Source: Entomortierella parvispora E1425 (Eukaryota > Fungi > Mortierellomycota). From it: DNA of 64,000 bases. The translations under genes were made by a program, and so were the position numbers. The notes under the pieces were generated by a model that was not told the origin of the DNA, searched no databases, and saw only the letters and a program-made list of their open reading frames with translations. Numbering within the stretch: the stretch's first letter is position 1; each line of letters starts with the position of its first letter. Of this stretch, positions 1,745 through 31,239 are shown in pieces. Location of the stretch: positions 620,001 to 684,000 of the forward strand of contig BQFW01000008.1 of the NCBI GenBank assembly GCA_020891255.1, given 5' to 3'.

Positions 1745-4700
1745 TTAAATCTCTCGATTTCGGACAAGCAGGTTCCAACAGGTATCCAGGTCCTGAGGCC
1801 CAATGGAGAGATCGCAGTCCAAAAAAGTCAAAAACTCATTCTCCATCCGATCCAAATCGTGCACCTGAAGGACCATGGGCGCAGCGTGAGAGGTCGTTGT
1901 GGATGCAGCAGTAGAAGGAGCGGATGAAGAGGCGGTAAAAGCCATGGAGTTCTTGATCGGTGTAGCTTGGATGGGCAAAGACCGGGCTGGAAAAGTTTCT
2001 TCTGGGGTGCTTGTTGTTCTCTTTGCTCTTTCCTCGGAGCTATTAGCAAATATACCACAGCTCAGGGTCGCACAAGAGCCTGCAGCGGCGGCAGAGGATG
2101 ACGCCGACCCCAAAGCAGCTGCAGTGGGCAAAGGAGCAAACTGCAGCACTGCATTTTGAGTTTGGGCACCTGGGGTGGTCATGCTGGGGGACAAGGGCGT
2201 AGTCGCTGCTGTAGAAGGCACTGTAGGAGGCATCGAGGGCGAAAGCGGAGGAGAAGGTGGAGGAGGCGACACAGTGTCTGCCATTGTCGTGGTCGAGGAT
2301 GGCCGCGGTGGTGGACTGAAGAAGGACCCCAGACTCAACAACCGGATCCATTCATAGTTTGAAAAGATCAACTCTGCCCTGGACCGAGCCTCCCAGATCT
2401 TTTCCTCAAGAGCTACTCGATTTTGTTGACGAAGCTCTTCAGGACTCTCCATTGATACTTCCTCTTTGATAGGAAGCATTTCTCCGCAGTCGTCTGCATC
2501 TCTTCCTCCAAGATATTCACCATTGGGACCGCAGATTTCAGGCTGAAGGTCCATTCGAGGAGAAGAAGACGGAGAGGCAGAAGCAGAGGAGAGGGATTGC
2601 TGTTCCTGAAGAAGAGTCTCAATCTCTACACTGCAACGATATTTGGCCGCAATGATGTACGCGACCAAGAAGAGTCGGTGAGAACAGCCGGGTTCACCTT
2701 TTGCCTCGGGATATTTCTATGAGAGTGGGCGAAAGAGCTTGTTAGTCGAGAATAAAAAAAAATGGACTAAAAATATTCTCAAATAAGCTTGAGTTTGGTA
2801 ACTTACAGCCTTCAGTCGGTCCACATAGATCAGGGCCAGTGTCAAGGTGAGGTTCTGGAACGGTACCTTGACCAAAGGGGAAAACCTCGGTGTGACCGAA
2901 GGCGATGGGATGGGGGACGAAATGGTGGACCTTTTGGCGGCCAGACTGTTGTTCCTACCCTCATTTCGAAAGGTGGGAGAGGTTGGGCTGGGCAACAGCA
3001 TGGAACCACGGCGATCGGTCGAAGACAGGGACCAAAGGTCTGGAACATTTCCAATTTGTTGTTGTGGTTGATGGTGCAAGTGGCGTCGGGTCTGATAATC
3101 GTGGTATTCAGACGTCTGACGATGCCTCTTGGCTGCGAGTGAGGACTCTGTCCTAAAAGGTCCCGGTCCAGCAGACATTGGAGACGGCAAAGAATGAGAG
3201 TGATCCTGGAAGGATCGACTGTTTCTCCTCGGTGTGACTGGACCAATAGTGCGACTCCGAGGTGAAGTCATTCCTGCATGGCCGTCGCTATTACTGATAT
3301 TAGGGGTTTGGTAGCTATAAGCGGTAGAGGTCGATGCGGAGGAATTGTTATAGGTATTGGTGTTGGTGTGGGCGTGAGTGTGGTTCGCGTTCTGGGCAGC
3401 AGCATGTTGTTGCTGCAGTTGTTGTTGTTGTTGTCGCTGTGCATGCAGGACCGTCAGTCGACGATGGATGACTGTCGCCTGATTGTGCAAAGCCGAGTTG
3501 TCCGCGGTCAAAGTCAAGATATGGCGGATATAATTAGCCAGTAATAAGAGTGGATTCGACTGCACTGGGTTGGCGGAGGATGATGATGCGGTCCGCGGTG
3601 GCTGCAATTGGTCTTCTGGACCGGGGCGATTGCTATTCTCCGTGTGAACATCCCGATGCTGTAGTTGTTGTTGCTGCAGTAACTGCACCTGTGCGCCTCT
3701 TTCCTGTTGGTCTGAACTCAATCCTGCTTCATGATCGGCCAACTCCTCCGCGGTAACTTTCGAGGTCGAAGGGGAGGCAGGGGGGTGTGATGCTGTATCT
3801 CCTGCTTGTGTTACCGCCTTTGTCGGCCCTGAGGCTGTTGTCAAGTCGGCTGGGGCAGAATCCTGAGCAGGTGCAGAACTGGATTCCCATCGGGAGACGG
3901 TGAGGTGGGTTGAGAATGCTATGAATAGAAAAAGGTGGGTGGCCGCAGTCAGGATAAAAAGAACAAGAGAAAAAGAAAGTTAGTGACATGTATGGATCGG
4001 CGCTCCAGAGCTTTGGCTCATCTTTCAAAAATATTGAATTTTTTTTTCTTTTCAAAATCGACCGAGGAAACAAGTGGAGTGGCGCAAGGCATTGGTCTTG
4101 TCCCAACAAAAGAGCAGAGAGAGAACAAAGAGCACCATGGGTGGATGAGGGGCCAAAGTACAAAAAGGACATGCTGTGTCACCCCAAGCACCAAAAAAAT
4201 CGCACAGCCCACCTTGAAATTACAATGTTTGTTTTCTCTTGACGCATGCATCCCAGCCACGCTGCACATGAGGGATATAGAACATGGGGGACACACCCTG
4301 TCCAAACAATTCGATGTGGGATTATATTCACGTATTTGGAAAAGTACAGATGCTTCGAAGAAAAAGACAACTCGCCCCTTGAAGACACAAGGCACAACAA
4401 AGTAGATTAAGCCTAGAACAAACACGCATGGGCTAAGCCGGTCTCGTACCCTCTCTTCTTCCCTGCTCGAGCGTCTTCTGCGTCGCGCTGCTACTCCCGG
4501 ATAAACCCACGCCCCTTGCAATGGTTCCAGTGATGAGTGAGCAAAAGAAAGATGGGCGACAAAAAGAATTTCGATGAATCGAACGAACCGAGGAAGAAAG
4601 ACACAACAGGGAGAGATGTGGGTCGCGGGCGAGTCTTTCATATCCCGCGGAGCATGGCTCAGCTTTTTTTTTTGAAATTCGATTTTTTTTTTTTTTACCT

Positions 4701-18018: not shown

Positions 18019-18347
18019 TTAAAGGTTGCGCTCGCAGTAGGCAGTGCCGCAGGTGTAGCAGCTGGGGCGGATGATCTGGCAGTGCCAGCCCTTGCCGCAA
18101 GGGGGGCAATCAGTGGGAGCTGGGGGGCACTTGAGGCAGTCTGATAGTTCGTCAAATCATGCAAGGAAGGCTGGATTAACGTCATTTCCATGGGTACCAT
18201 AGAGTTGAATAACTGAGTGAAAAAAACAGAGTGAATATCCAAAGTGGAGCTTCTGTTACCTTCCTGGGAATCACCCTGGGCGGCGGCGGATCCGAGCACC
18301 ATTATCATGGCGATGGCAAAGAAAGAGGCAACACGAGTGGAAAGCAT
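18019..18347 (-). CDS. Secreted 69-aa 8-Cys peptide (Opy2-like Cys-rich domain); exons 18347-18260, 18140-18019
   Basis: Signal peptide MLSTRVASFFAIAMIMVLGSAAA, then a phase-1 intron 18141-18259 (GTAACA..CAG). Spliced product ends DCLKCPPAPTDCPPCGKGWHCQIIRPSCYTCGTAYCERNL*. This frame is not in the ORF track. Confidence 0.85.
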
Positions 18348-18447: not shown

Positions 18448-20196
18448 GAATAATAGGCAGTGACTTCAAGTTGCCGGGTGGCTCTATTAGGACGGGATGG
18501 AGGAAAACGCGAAGCAATACAGTCTACCCATGAAGAAGGAGGCTGCAGAAAAACAAGTACGCGTCTTGTCTCCCCGGGTTGCTCCTCGCTTCTCCTCCGG
18601 AGGAATTCAGGTCCGGGTTCAAATATGCAAGTTCTACTACGAAAAGAGAGCAGTCAATGACCAGAAGTCTTGGATCATAGATGCACCAAAAAAAAAACGC
18701 GTCAACCCAGGAATCTGAGAACCCATGGTTATTACCTTCCTACTCACTCCCTCAGACGCGCGATAGCAAGAACCCCGGTCTGCAAAACAAAACAAAAAAA
18801 AAGAAGGACGCAACTAAGCGAAACCGACCATTGCTTCTGTCGGCGATTTAGATTTTTTCGATCGGTGCATTGCATTGCATGTCGCGCAGCCATACCGTTT
18901 GTCTGACAAATGGCGCACACGTTTATATTGACATTCTCCTTCAGTCAAGCTGTTAACCAAACAAAACGATGGGTGCTCAACCGTGGGTAATTTCCCAAAG
19001 GGAATCGTGGCTCTGCCTTTGGGCGTAAACTTGGTCGCGGTTTCAAAGCGTCTTCATGTTTTTGTTACAGTCCCCGGGTTCAATGGGTCTCTAATTGTTC
19101 ACAGGTGCACGTTCTGGGGTGGGGTCCTGGGAAGACGGTTATTGCAAAATGGCATGGGCTCTACCAAAAAAAAAAAAAAAAAAAAAATCTCGCTGAAGGG
19201 CTGTTACACCTTGCATCAATCATTCCCCAACCCAATACGACTCGGTTCTTTCATTCAGTCGGAACATAGGTTCCCGTGAACTCTAGGATCGAGGATTCAC
19301 TAGATAGGCTGTGAGGTAGGCTGTGAGGTGGGAGCTGACGCCATGCCCTCAAAGAACTGATGTTGAAACGACTACGGTATTATTCAACTAGACGTGTGTG
19401 GACGCGTTGGACACAGTACACACAACCCCTGCCATCCTCCTTGTGAATTGGATGCTGGGTGCCTTCCGTTGGATAGCTGCCAACTGCGCACGTTTTGGTC
19501 TATTGCCGCCTCTATAGGTCGTTGCAGCATCTTTGCTTGAAGAGAGGACACTAATCGCAGGAGATACCTTGCAGGGCTTTAATGTGCTTCATGCAAGCAA
19601 GTGTTTTTATTTTTCGAGGGAAGAGGGGGAAGAGGTTCGACATCAGAAAGACCTGCAAAGGAACCAAAACAAGAGTTCTTCCCGATTCCTACTCACCGGG
19701 GTTCTCTCAAATCAAGGAGGCGCTGTATCTGTTCATCTGCATCAGATCTCGCCATCTAACCAGAAGGGGGGATTCTATCAACAGGACATTGTGTGACGGT
19801 ATGGTTGCTATGGTCGAAAGAGTTACTGGGAGGGCAGTTGAGATCTGTCCGCCCGATCCCAAAATCTTTGCGAGACAACGCTGCTTGTCAAACTTTCTTT
19901 TCTGCCCTCCATTCAAGGACTCGCGTCGTTGGGTGATGGCGAGAACGCCGGCGCTCAAGCAACAGGTGGAGTGGGACGCGTTGCGCCTTACTTTGGTTCA
20001 AAAATTCATCGCCACAGACACAATCACTCATCCAAAGTGAAGGGAGGCCCAATGTCTATCAACGAGTAGGTACGATTGCAGCAAAAAAAAAAAGCTTTTA
20101 TTTCTTTTTTTGCCTTTTCTCCAAAGCGTCGAGTGCTTGAGACAAAGTCACTTCAGAAGAAAAGTGCAAAGAGGGGACGGTAGGTGTAGTTGGGCC

Positions 20197-20612
20197 TTAA
20201 ACCTTGGGCTTGCAGGAAGCAGAGCCGCACGATGTGCATGTAGCGTCGATGATGTCGCAGAACTGGCCTTCAGGGCATCCCTGGGCACACATAGGAGGAG
20301 CAAAGCACTGGATACAGGCTATGAAGAGATAAAAAAAATAGTGATTAATATGTAAGTCTCAAGTTGCTGCCACTGAGGTCAAGCTGTCGGAGAGTGGCCT
20401 ATATAGTTCTTACTACTCTCCTTGGGCTTGCAGGAAGCAGAGCCGCACGATGTGCATGTAGCGTCGATGATCTCGCAGAATTGGCCTTCTGGGCAACCCT
20501 GGGCGCACATAGGAGGAGCAAAGCACTGGATACAGGCTATGAAGAGGTATGTAAGTTCCAAGTTGTTGTCACTGAGGTCAAGCTGTCAGAGAGTGGCCAA
20601 TGTAGTTCTTAC
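20197..20612 (-). repeat. Direct tandem duplication of an intron+exon unit (about 199 and 217 nt)
   Basis: 20414-20612 and 20197-20413 align over both intron and exon. The second intron has a net 19-nt insertion. Confidence 0.95.
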
Positions 20613-20709
20613 TATCCTTTGTCTTGCCTGCAGGCATAGCAACGGCTGCGGATGCAAGCATCATCGTCATGGCGACAGCAAAGAGGGAAGCAACGCGGGC
20701 AGAAAGCAT
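20197..20709 (-). CDS. Secreted 113-aa peptide with two tandem 8-Cys (Opy2-like) domains; exons 20709-20613, 20536-20414, 20318-20197
   Basis: Signal peptide MLSARVASLFAVAMTMMLASAAVA. Two near-identical exons encode CIQCFAPPMCAQGCPEGQFC(E/D)IIDATCTSCGSASCKPK, each preceded by a homologous phase-1 GTAAGA..TAG intron. Confidence 0.88.
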
Positions 20710-21952
20710 CTTGATATTGTTTTCTTTGGTGGGTAGTGGAGGGTGGGTGAGGTTGACTTAAGACGACTGGTGAAGAATGGTGATTGCTGGAAGATTGGAA
20801 GAAAATACCATGGAGACTTCCTCTCCTTTTATGAGGAAATGAGGACCATAGCATCCTTTCCTCAGAGACGGCGGGACAACAGTCTTGGCGCTATCAGCTC
20901 CCTGAAAGAGTTGAGCGAGGCAACTTCCGCCCGCCTCGTTGAAAACAAAAAGGCGCGTTTACCGGTTTCCTAACCCAATCTAGAGCTCCCTCAAAGCTGC
21001 AGCCTTCAATGTTGCGCGATCCGGGTAACTCGAGCGGCGTGCGATTTGTTGCATTGCATTGCATTTCAATGCACCCAACGCCAAGTTAAAAAAAAAAAAA
21101 AAAAAAAAAAAAGGCGCACAATTCTTCGATTTCATTCATACCGTCATCTGATGCCATAGCTGCAATTGCGGACCATAGGACAATTCTCTCCAACAAACAT
21201 CTTATGTTGCACGTGTAAGGACCACTCAACTGTCCCACAGGGGTGCACGAAGAGGCAATCGAAGAATCCTGCATGGGAGCAACAAATCGGACTTGGGATC
21301 TCACCATGGGGCTCCTTCCTTCTTTTTTGTCGAATCCTCTGTCCGCCCCGCAACTTTCCAGCATGTGTGAGAGCAAAGAAAAGTACATGCACGGGCGTAT
21401 ATATTGTTCTTTGTGGTTCCAACGGCGTGCAAGTGCCACACAACAGACGGTGGTCCACTGGTAGTAGCGATCAGCTGTGCATCAAGATCGGTCCCCGAGG
21501 ATGACTCAATCTCTCTTTTTTTTTTTTTTTTGAAAAGAACTGCTGATGTTACATGGATATGGTCCCCAATGCAATGTCATCAATTGCTGCGCTCGCAACA
21601 ATTTTGCGAGAAGACATTTGCAGATAGAGAAGACGTGGCGCTGCTGCGTGCCCAAAGGACAGGCTCAAAGAAAGTGCCATACCACATGCTACAGCCATAG
21701 AGTTTTTCATTTTTATTTTTGCGATGAGAGATGGAGGGCAATCATAAATAGCAACGGAATGGACATTGGCATAGAATGAAAGAAACCTACGAAGAAGCGA
21801 CCGCAGAGCCAATAAACAACGTGCTACGTCTCTTTGACATTTAGTTCTCGAGACAGGGGCAGTCTAGTCGATGGGCGCTCCTTTCTCTATTCTAAGCTCC
21901 ATGGGCTGATCATCGGTGAAAGCTTGTGCCGCTGACTTGATTCGTAGTGTTG

Positions 21953-28911: not shown

Positions 28912-31239
28912 TTATTGGTAGATCTGACTATAGGCGTTGGCACCACCAAGGACGCAATGATCCATGGCATCGGCATCGGTGTTGGTCAACTGCGAGGGGT
29001 TGCCCCACCAGATAGGAGCGGCACCATCCCATGACTGGATACCGAAGAAGATGACAAGACCCGAGACGGCAACACCAGTATCCAAAGCGGCGGACGTAAG
29101 GTAGTTGTAACGGGCCCACCAGTCATAGCGGTAACGTCTGAGGAGGAAGGCAAAGATGAAACCAAGGAAGAGACCGTTGGTGTACATGTAAGGGAGAGCT
29201 GGGGGCATGTTGGAGGTGGCAGCCAACAACACGGGCCAGTGCACAAACTTCAACCAGGTCTTGGTAGGGAACTTCTTGGCCAAAGCCCAGAAGAGCAAAG
29301 GAAGAACAGCACCGACGACGAAACCCCACTGGACTGGACCATAGATGGCACCATCTTGACTACCAAAGACACGACCAGGTCCAATGGCTCCCCAAATGAT
29401 GGAGGCAGAGTAGAAGGTCTTGGTAGAACGGCAAGTGAAGGGGTAACCCTGGGGGGTGCAGACGTTAGGGCGAGTGTTGACCAACCAGGTGGCGGTACCC
29501 AAGTTGATGATGCAGGAAATGACCGAGGAGACGACCTGGGCCATGAACATGGTGCGAGGAGGAATCTTCATGTAGTGTCCCAACTTCAAGTCAGAGACAA
29601 AGTTGAGGGCCTGAACGTTGACAATGTAACCGTAGGTCTTGAAGGTGACGTTGGCAATGGCGTGTCCGGGGAGGAGGTAACCAATGACGTACTCGGTAAC
29701 AATGTTAAGACCGGGCTGCTGGTTGGTAACGGCCTGGACAATACCGACGGGGAGGACAAAGATCAAGGCAATAGCGAGAGCCAAGATAAGGGCCCACCAA
29801 GGCATGTAATCCCAGACAACACAGGTAACCATGGAGAGGGCAATGGTGATGATGAAGAGAATACCGTACCACCAGTCAGGAACCTCGGGGTAGACAGACA
29901 TGAGGCGAGAGTGAATATCCTCGTTCTCGTGACGGGCAGACTTCCAGCGGGCAACAATCTCGCGACCGTTGTAGAGGGCGACGTGAACGAGGGTAGCGGT
30001 CAAACCGGCGAAACCAACTCCGTAGGTCAAGGCAAAGAAGGAGTCCATGCGGAGAGGACCGTAGGCGAGGTAGGAAGCCTCATCTAAGAGACCAGCACTG
30101 TCGAGAACAGCGGTCTTGTTGTACACGGTTCCATCCACCTTGTAAAGAGTAGAGGTGACAATGGGGAAGTTCTTGGAGCCCCAAAGGTCAGTGTAGTAGG
30201 CCCAAGGAACCATGATGTAGGTGACGAGGATGAATCCGACCAAGATGTTGACCTGAGCGAACCAGGGGGTGACCAAGGGAGCGACATAGGCAGAGGCGGC
30301 AGCCCAATCAAGAGCAATGACACCAATTCCGAGGCCGTTCGATCCAGTAAGAGTGGCGAGAACCTGGTTGGAGGGCTTGATCCAGCAAATCCAGGCAATG
30401 GTTCCGATGGTAGGGAAGAGAAGACCAGGCAACCAGTAGTAGATAAACATTCCTCCGGCGACGATCATGAAGTACTTGATGCGGGGCATGCGTCCGTTGT
30501 CCTCCTCACCCTCAAGAACGTGCAGAGAACGGAAGAGCGAGGCAGTGACGAGAGTACCAGGCCAGACCATGTGGGCGGGGCGAACCAAGAAGCGGCGAAT
30601 GATACCGGCGAGGGCGAAACCAGTGATCTGGGTGGTGAGAACCAAGAACATACCGGCGACGAAGGGCTTCTCCGAGTGGTACCAGATCTTCTGCAAGATA
30701 ACAATGTCGACAGCGTAGGCGGTCGAAGTGTTGCAGGCAACCATGGTTCCGATCAAAACGTGCTCCTTGATGGAGAATGGACCAGGGTTGAAAGAGAATT
30801 TGTAACCAAAGAAGGAGAACTGACGGGTAGGCAAGACACGGGCCATGAAGTGACCCATGGGGAGAGAGAGAAGAGCAACAACAGAGTATCCGATACTGAT
30901 GGTGGTTTGGCGAAGGTAAAAGAACTGGTTGACGAAGGAAATGATGGCAGTCCAGAGCAAACCGAGGAACCACATGCGGAAGGTATTGTAGGGAATAGTG
31001 GGGTCATCGGTGTCTGAGAGAGCAAGGGAGAGCACAGGATTCGTTAGAAATCAATTGATGTTTGCTCAACTGTGATAAACAGTTGGATCGGCCAACTTAC
31101 TGTCGATGGTGACACGGACTTCCTCGATGGGGGAGTTGTCCTCCTCTTCGAGGTTGGTGACATGCTCCTCAATGTCCTCGCGGACCTTCTCATCGACGTA
31201 GTCGATCTTGTCGTCAAAGACTTGTTCGGTCTTAGACAT
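28912..31239 (-). CDS. OPT-family oligopeptide transporter; exons 31239-31101, 31013-28912
   Basis: SPIEEVRVTI.NTDDP, NPGPFSIKEH and DLKLGHYMKIPPR signature motifs, with many transmembrane segments. Confidence 0.95.

Follow-up and report, generated by a model that had tools for sequence, protein, structure and literature searches.

Our analysis of a 64,000-nt window of Entomortierella parvispora E1425 (contig BQFW01000008.1, positions 620,001 to 684,000; "the window" below is this whole stretch) indicates that a three-exon gene on its minus strand likely acquired its second cysteine-rich module by tandem duplication of an intron together with the following exon, and that selection has likely kept both modules of its predicted secreted product. 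The gene is a Mortierellaceae gene that was probably missed by annotation. Specifically, it comprises the following elements:

20709-20613, minus strand: exon 1, 97 nt, encoding MLSARVASLFAVAMTMMLASAAVAMPAGKTKD plus 1 nt; putative signal peptide.
20612-20537, minus strand: intron 1, 76 nt, phase 1, with donor GTAAGAAC and acceptor TTCATAG; homologous to intron 2.
20536-20414, minus strand: exon 2, 123 nt, symmetric (1-1), encoding the first 8-Cys Opy2-type module, CIQCFAPPMCAQGCPEGQFCEIIDATCTSCGSASCKPKES.
20413-20319, minus strand: intron 2, 95 nt, phase 1; an intron 1 copy that carries a 19-nt insertion and differs at 8 positions by substitution.
20318-20197, minus strand: exon 3, 122 nt, encoding the second copy of the module (…EGQFCDIID…KPKV), with stop codon TAA at 20199-20197.

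Read by eye, the N-terminal segment encoded by exon 1 is laid out like a signal peptide, starting with a basic n-region (MLSAR) and continuing with a hydrophobic core of 14 residues and an A-x-A site; cleavage would be likely after AVA at residue 24. This layout is kept in relatives P0004, P0021, and L012, and exon 1 shows 39% amino-acid identity to the N-terminus of Gryganskiella P0021. Exons 2 and 3 each encode a module of 35 residues with 8 Cys, and have in common the reading CIQCFAPPMCAQGCPEGQFC[E/D]IIDATCTSCGSASCKPK. Splicing of all three exons would yield a product of about 113 aa with 16 cysteines and with 6 residues between the modules, predicted to be a small, soluble, secreted, disulphide-rich protein of about 9 kDa. 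Exon 2 also contains an alternative in-frame donor, a GT at 20416 beside the GT at 20413 (GAGA/GTA/GTAAGA); use of this donor would give an exon 2 of 120 nt rather than 123 nt, and products could then differ by one Ser.

The two intron-exon units are 92% identical in an alignment of 199 with 217 nt. The intron portion contains 8 substitutions and one 19-nt indel, the common exon portion contains 5 substitutions, and donor and acceptor sequences are the same in both units. A repeat finder recovered the same pair of units independently (families D1 and D5, with D5 at 90% identity over 67 nt). Counted codon by codon, 5 of the 114 positions compared over 38 codons differ between the exons: four differences are synonymous (TGC/TGT, GGT/GGA, CCA/CCT, and CAA/CAG) and one exchanges Glu for Asp (GAG/GAC). 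This is exactly the list given in the original prediction, and its description of homologous introns of 76 and 95 nt, both in phase 1 and flanking a symmetric exon 2, agrees with our alignment and with the exact coordinates fixed on the minus strand.

The exon copies have a dS of 0.19 and a dN of 0.011 (dN/dS ~0.06; Fisher p 0.007, from 4 synonymous and 1 non-synonymous changes over 24 and 90 sites, five substitutions in total), as would be expected under the purifying selection that had been proposed for both copies. The two modules appear to have been constrained as coding sequence since their last common sequence, and, given this ratio and p value, both therefore appear to be translated. 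The intron distance (K 0.11) is not different from the exon dS.

As in tandem exon duplication generally, the adjacent exons and the introns preceding them are homologous, and symmetric phases keep the reading frame. The ancestral gene would have had one module in one terminal exon, like the neighbouring gene at 18347 and the Gryganskiella and Podila counterparts described below. A tandem duplication of about 200 nt would then have taken in both the phase-1 intron and the module exon, with breakpoints probably in a short common stretch represented by GCAAGACAAAGG where exon 1 ends and by GCAAGCCCAAGG where the module ends. Exon 1 ends in GCAAGACAAAGGATA, before GTAAG, and the module exon ends in GCAAGCCCAAGG, before TTTAA in exon 3; these two ends have 10 of 12 bases in common. 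Exon 2 ends in GCAAGCCCAAGGA-GAG-TA, before GTAAG; here the module end is joined to the junction of exon 1 with intron 1, and three additional bases keep the frame. Unequal exchange or slippage at short homology would fit this junction pattern. The 1-1 phase of the unit would preserve the reading frame and therefore give a two-module protein, in which both modules would since have been kept by purifying selection. The original prediction had called this exon shuffling; tandem copying of an intron and an exon stands, but the event is internal to one gene and involves no shuffling between genes.

Animal extracellular Cys-rich modules, EGF-like and others, have been multiplied by tandem duplication of phase 1-1 exons. 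These cases resemble the present one in that a symmetric phase-1 exon corresponds to one autonomous disulphide-rich module and is multiplied together with its intron; here, in contrast, the setting is an early-diverging fungus, the event lies within one gene, and the module is a fungal Opy2-type module. The mechanism itself is textbook, and the window case is a clean but ordinary one.

The window contains a second gene of the same family, with a single module:

18019-18347, minus strand: single-module paralogue, PF09463 33.5 bits, above the cut-off; exon 1 at 18347-18260, phase-1 intron at 18259-18141, and exon 2 at 18140-18019 (CLKCPPAPTDCPPCGKGWHCQIIRPSCYTCGTAYCERNL).

Its exon 1 is 78% identical in nucleotide sequence to exon 1 of the two-module gene (repeat family D6), it has a phase-1 intron and the same 8-Cys module, and 1,850 nt separate the two genes; the paralogy and the spacing of 1.85 kb that had been claimed are both correct. 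The modules themselves are 36% identical between the two genes, and the paralogue is 62% identical to Gryganskiella KAG0043412. Alignment of the flanks of the two paralogues gave no convincing homology outside the genes except a GCATT repeat. In particular, the 13-mer GCATTGCATTGCA, a (GCATT)n run, has 2 exact matches in the 64-kb window versus 0.15 expected, one near each gene:

21051-21063: GCATTGCATTGCA copy 1, about 340 nt upstream of the ATG of the two-module gene.
18867-18879: GCATTGCATTGCA copy 2, about 520 nt upstream of the ATG of the paralogue.

The same 13-mer has 38 matches in the 38.9-Mb genome, and it may be a common cis element or a relic of gene duplication.

To place the module, the Pfam scan, protein search, and fold prediction were performed exon by exon. 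The Pfam Opy2 profile (PF09463) has 35 positions and eight cysteines, and a curated cut-off of 22.1 bits; exon 2 and exon 3, each alone, score 21.5 and 21.3 bits, slightly below this cut-off, and the two modules joined in one protein would give a higher sum. All three window modules align over profile positions 1-35 of 35 without gaps. A six-frame scan of the whole 38.9-Mb genome with PF09463 returned matches in these two genes only, and detected no canonical Opy2. A profile of the window modules returned one more relative from the genome, a degenerate, seven-Cys module on contig 10 behind a phase-1 intron:

L007 1357-1617, contig 10 at about 860983-861243, plus strand: short hydrophobic exon 1, phase-1 intron, and module CQVCDELPFCSPPCRYGNYCNIIDYTCSTVCMTATSLE.

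This module has lost its eighth Cys and may be a decaying copy. Two other genome matches were judged spurious: L008 lies antisense to a Gln-rich ORF, and L009 scores 16.8 bits and contains an internal stop.

An AlphaFold2 model of the module (exon 2) has a mean pLDDT of 87.6 and contains one beta hairpin. The model weakly resembles EGF, TNFR-CRD, and furin-like repeats, none significantly. A sequence search of the PDB gave nothing meaningful (best match, a nodulin peptide, E 0.014), Foldseek with the model against the PDB gave nothing at E < 1, a wide VIA-align search with the model gave nothing at Z >= 2, and an ESM Atlas search gave uninformative scores, below 0.8.

Relatives were found with profiles. 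A word-index protein search with the 68-aa exon-2 frame and the 45-aa paralogue frame, a method insensitive for such short queries, gave no match; P0004 and the 45-aa query share four 5-residue words, yet that search gave nothing. A three-module profile compared with 1.84 billion representative proteins gave 22 matches, the convincing ones being hypothetical proteins of Mortierella, Podila, Lobosporangium, and Gryganskiella, and also of Syncephalis and Mycena. Several relatives exceed the Pfam Opy2 cut-off (44, 96, 90, 29, and 31 bits), and some carry the automatic UniRef name "Membrane anchor Opy2 N-terminal domain-containing protein". In one match, P0022 (414 aa), three Opy2-type modules are combined with a protein-kinase-like region (Pfam Pkinase, 42 bits), so that the module occurs there in another architecture. 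The Mortierellaceae relatives have 1, 2, 4, or about 5 modules per protein, and include:

KAF9099639.1, Mortierella sp. GBA35: 2 modules.
XP_021881382.1, Lobosporangium transversale: 2 modules.
KAG0222596.1, Mortierella sp. GBA43: 4 modules and a partial one.
KAG0043411.1 and KAG0043412.1, Gryganskiella cystojenkinii: adjacent genes, one module each.
KAG0354455.1, Podila minutissima: 1 module.

Like the window gene, the Mortierellaceae relatives have a putative signal peptide and tandem 8-Cys modules and end soon after the last Cys, and gene pairs occur in the same order as in the window: a variable-copy gene, then a single-module gene. In contrast, the window modules are only 42-57% identical to the nearest Mortierellaceae modules, and the window gene differs from its relatives in having the shortest linker (6 residues) and introns that can still be aligned with each other. 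KAG0043411 and KAG0043412 have adjacent locus tags on one 15.5-kb Gryganskiella cystojenkinii contig. KAG0043411 has the putative signal peptide and C-x5-C-x3-C spacing in common with the two-module gene, and is its apparent positional counterpart, with one domain only. The module nearest to the duplicated one is that of the single-module protein Podila P0006 (57% identity). Identity between the two modules of the duplicated gene is 97%, whereas all other modules lie at distances above 1.3 substitutions per site in a domain tree of 36 columns, the branching order of which is too weak for orthology calls; orthology with the single-domain genes would rest on Cys spacing, signal peptide, and gene order.

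A further gene pair in the same order as in the window, a multi-module gene followed by a single-module gene, is present in a soil metagenome contig:

L011, contig Ga0247824_10013546: four-module gene at 1804-2918; one-module gene at 3241-3567, on the same strand.

In the four-module gene, a signal exon is followed by four module exons, each with phase-1 introns at its boundaries, and one domain per phase-1 exon is found also in L012 and L007. The L011 module exons are 74-90% identical, and their introns no longer align. In particular, exons d1 and d4 are 90% identical in DNA sequence and have unrelated introns, which suggests either exon-limited gene conversion or strong constraint.

The last observation bears on the age of the window structure. 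Two modules could be an old feature of the gene, with the 92% similarity of the units produced by later gene conversion between them (concerted evolution). The d1/d4 pair of L011 fits such a history, as do the very similar modules inside single genes of Mortierella sp. GBA35 and GBAus27b, since similar modules within a gene are the pattern expected either from conversion or from repeated duplication. In the window gene, however, similarity extends over the whole intron, and the intron distance of 0.11 is near the exon dS of 0.19, as fits a single event involving the whole unit; moreover, Podila P0006 and Gryganskiella P0021, the nearest counterparts identified, are single-module proteins. We therefore regard old modules homogenized by conversion as unlikely, while giving this account somewhat more weight than the others considered here.

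Still less probable, in our view, is that the mature mRNA contains only one module exon, with exon 2 skipped or used alternatively, the product being monovalent and the other exon being spare or regulatory. Tandemly duplicated exons often become alternatively spliced, and skipping of the symmetric, 1-1, exon 2 would keep the frame. The original prediction had raised skipping, and retention of intron 2, as sources of monovalent isoforms; retention would indeed read …KPKESSKNYIGHSPTA and then a stop. Against single-exon usage, four of the five exon differences are synonymous, versus about 21% expected if unconstrained, the exons are less diverged than the introns, the donors and acceptors of both units are intact and identical, and annotated relatives have 2 to 5 modules per protein. 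An assembly artefact is hardly credible: tandem repeats can be mis-assembled, but the 13 substitutions and the 19-nt indel that separate the copies form a pattern shaped by selection, the 38.9-Mb assembly consists of only 20 contigs, and the locus gave a single match when the genome was searched at the DNA level. The original prediction had likewise called an artefact unlikely.

Tandem duplication of the whole intron-exon unit is the reading we prefer, but its original description as recent and "caught in the act" is overstated. A neutral divergence of 0.11 (intron) to 0.19 (dS) suggests that millions of years have passed since the duplication, or since a conversion of the whole unit. The same process has also repeatedly made genes of 2 to about 5 domains in related fungi. 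The doubling in the window is therefore lineage-specific and one instance of recurrent tandem exon duplication; of the events seen in the family it is the most recent, given that its introns are still recognizably homologous.

In yeast, the mucins Hkr1 and Msb2 are bound at their HMH domain by the eight-cysteine CR domain, which is the extracellular part of the membrane anchor Opy2 (PMC13233613). The window gene resembles Opy2 in having an eight-cysteine module that aligns end to end with the 35-position Opy2 profile, and in the predicted placement of this module outside the cell via the secretory pathway. It differs in three respects: the yeast anchor has a membrane part and a cytoplasmic part, whereas the window gene stops 4 codons after the last Cys; the window gene carries the module twice; and its product is predicted to be soluble, of about 9 kDa, and not a signalling anchor. 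Specifically, no transmembrane segment follows the CR domain, as TAA ends the window gene there and the relatives end there too; no open frame continues the gene beyond the stop on the minus strand; and no sequence that could correspond to the cytoplasmic Ste50-binding region follows the second module. Lacking membrane and cytoplasmic parts, the window gene is therefore not an Opy2 orthologue; as read from sequence, its product would be a stand-alone secreted CR-module protein.

By a weak analogy with the Opy2 CR domain, the module may function in extracellular binding, with a valency that would be set by exon copy number. A bolder extension of the analogy, which we offer as a long shot, is that secreted CR modules might act as soluble ligands or antagonists of Msb2/Hkr1-class mucin sensors, either of the fungus itself or of neighbouring fungi, with an exon-tuned valency of 1 to about 5. 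If so, the Opy2 ectodomain of Dikarya and the secreted proteins would represent two uses of one mobile extracellular module. Two other roles were considered. A cationic antimicrobial peptide was judged less likely, the mature two-module protein being slightly acidic when residues are counted by eye, and a Kex2-processed repeat precursor was judged unlikely, the linker KPKEST having no dibasic site.

The window gene provides a tidy natural example of a small, predicted secreted protein gaining a second putative binding module while intron homology is still visible. It also draws attention to an unstudied family whose members, predicted to be secreted, consist of the Opy2 Cys-rich module alone and occur in Mortierellaceae, with matches in Syncephalis and Mycena; a literature search found no paper on secreted Opy2-domain proteins. 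The family could help to ask what the Opy2 module binds outside the yeast osmosensing complex.

The window also contains a gene of a multi-copy family:

28915-31035, minus strand: uninterrupted OPT oligopeptide transporter ORF, Pfam 614 bits.

The best named matches of this ORF are from Gryganskiella cystojenkinii (86%) and Mortierella antarctica (85%), and none of the proteins returned is identical to it. All organism-named matches among the 120 listed are from Mortierellaceae, a family assignment that is safe, and the Entomortierella parvispora proteins listed there are 75-76% identical to it.
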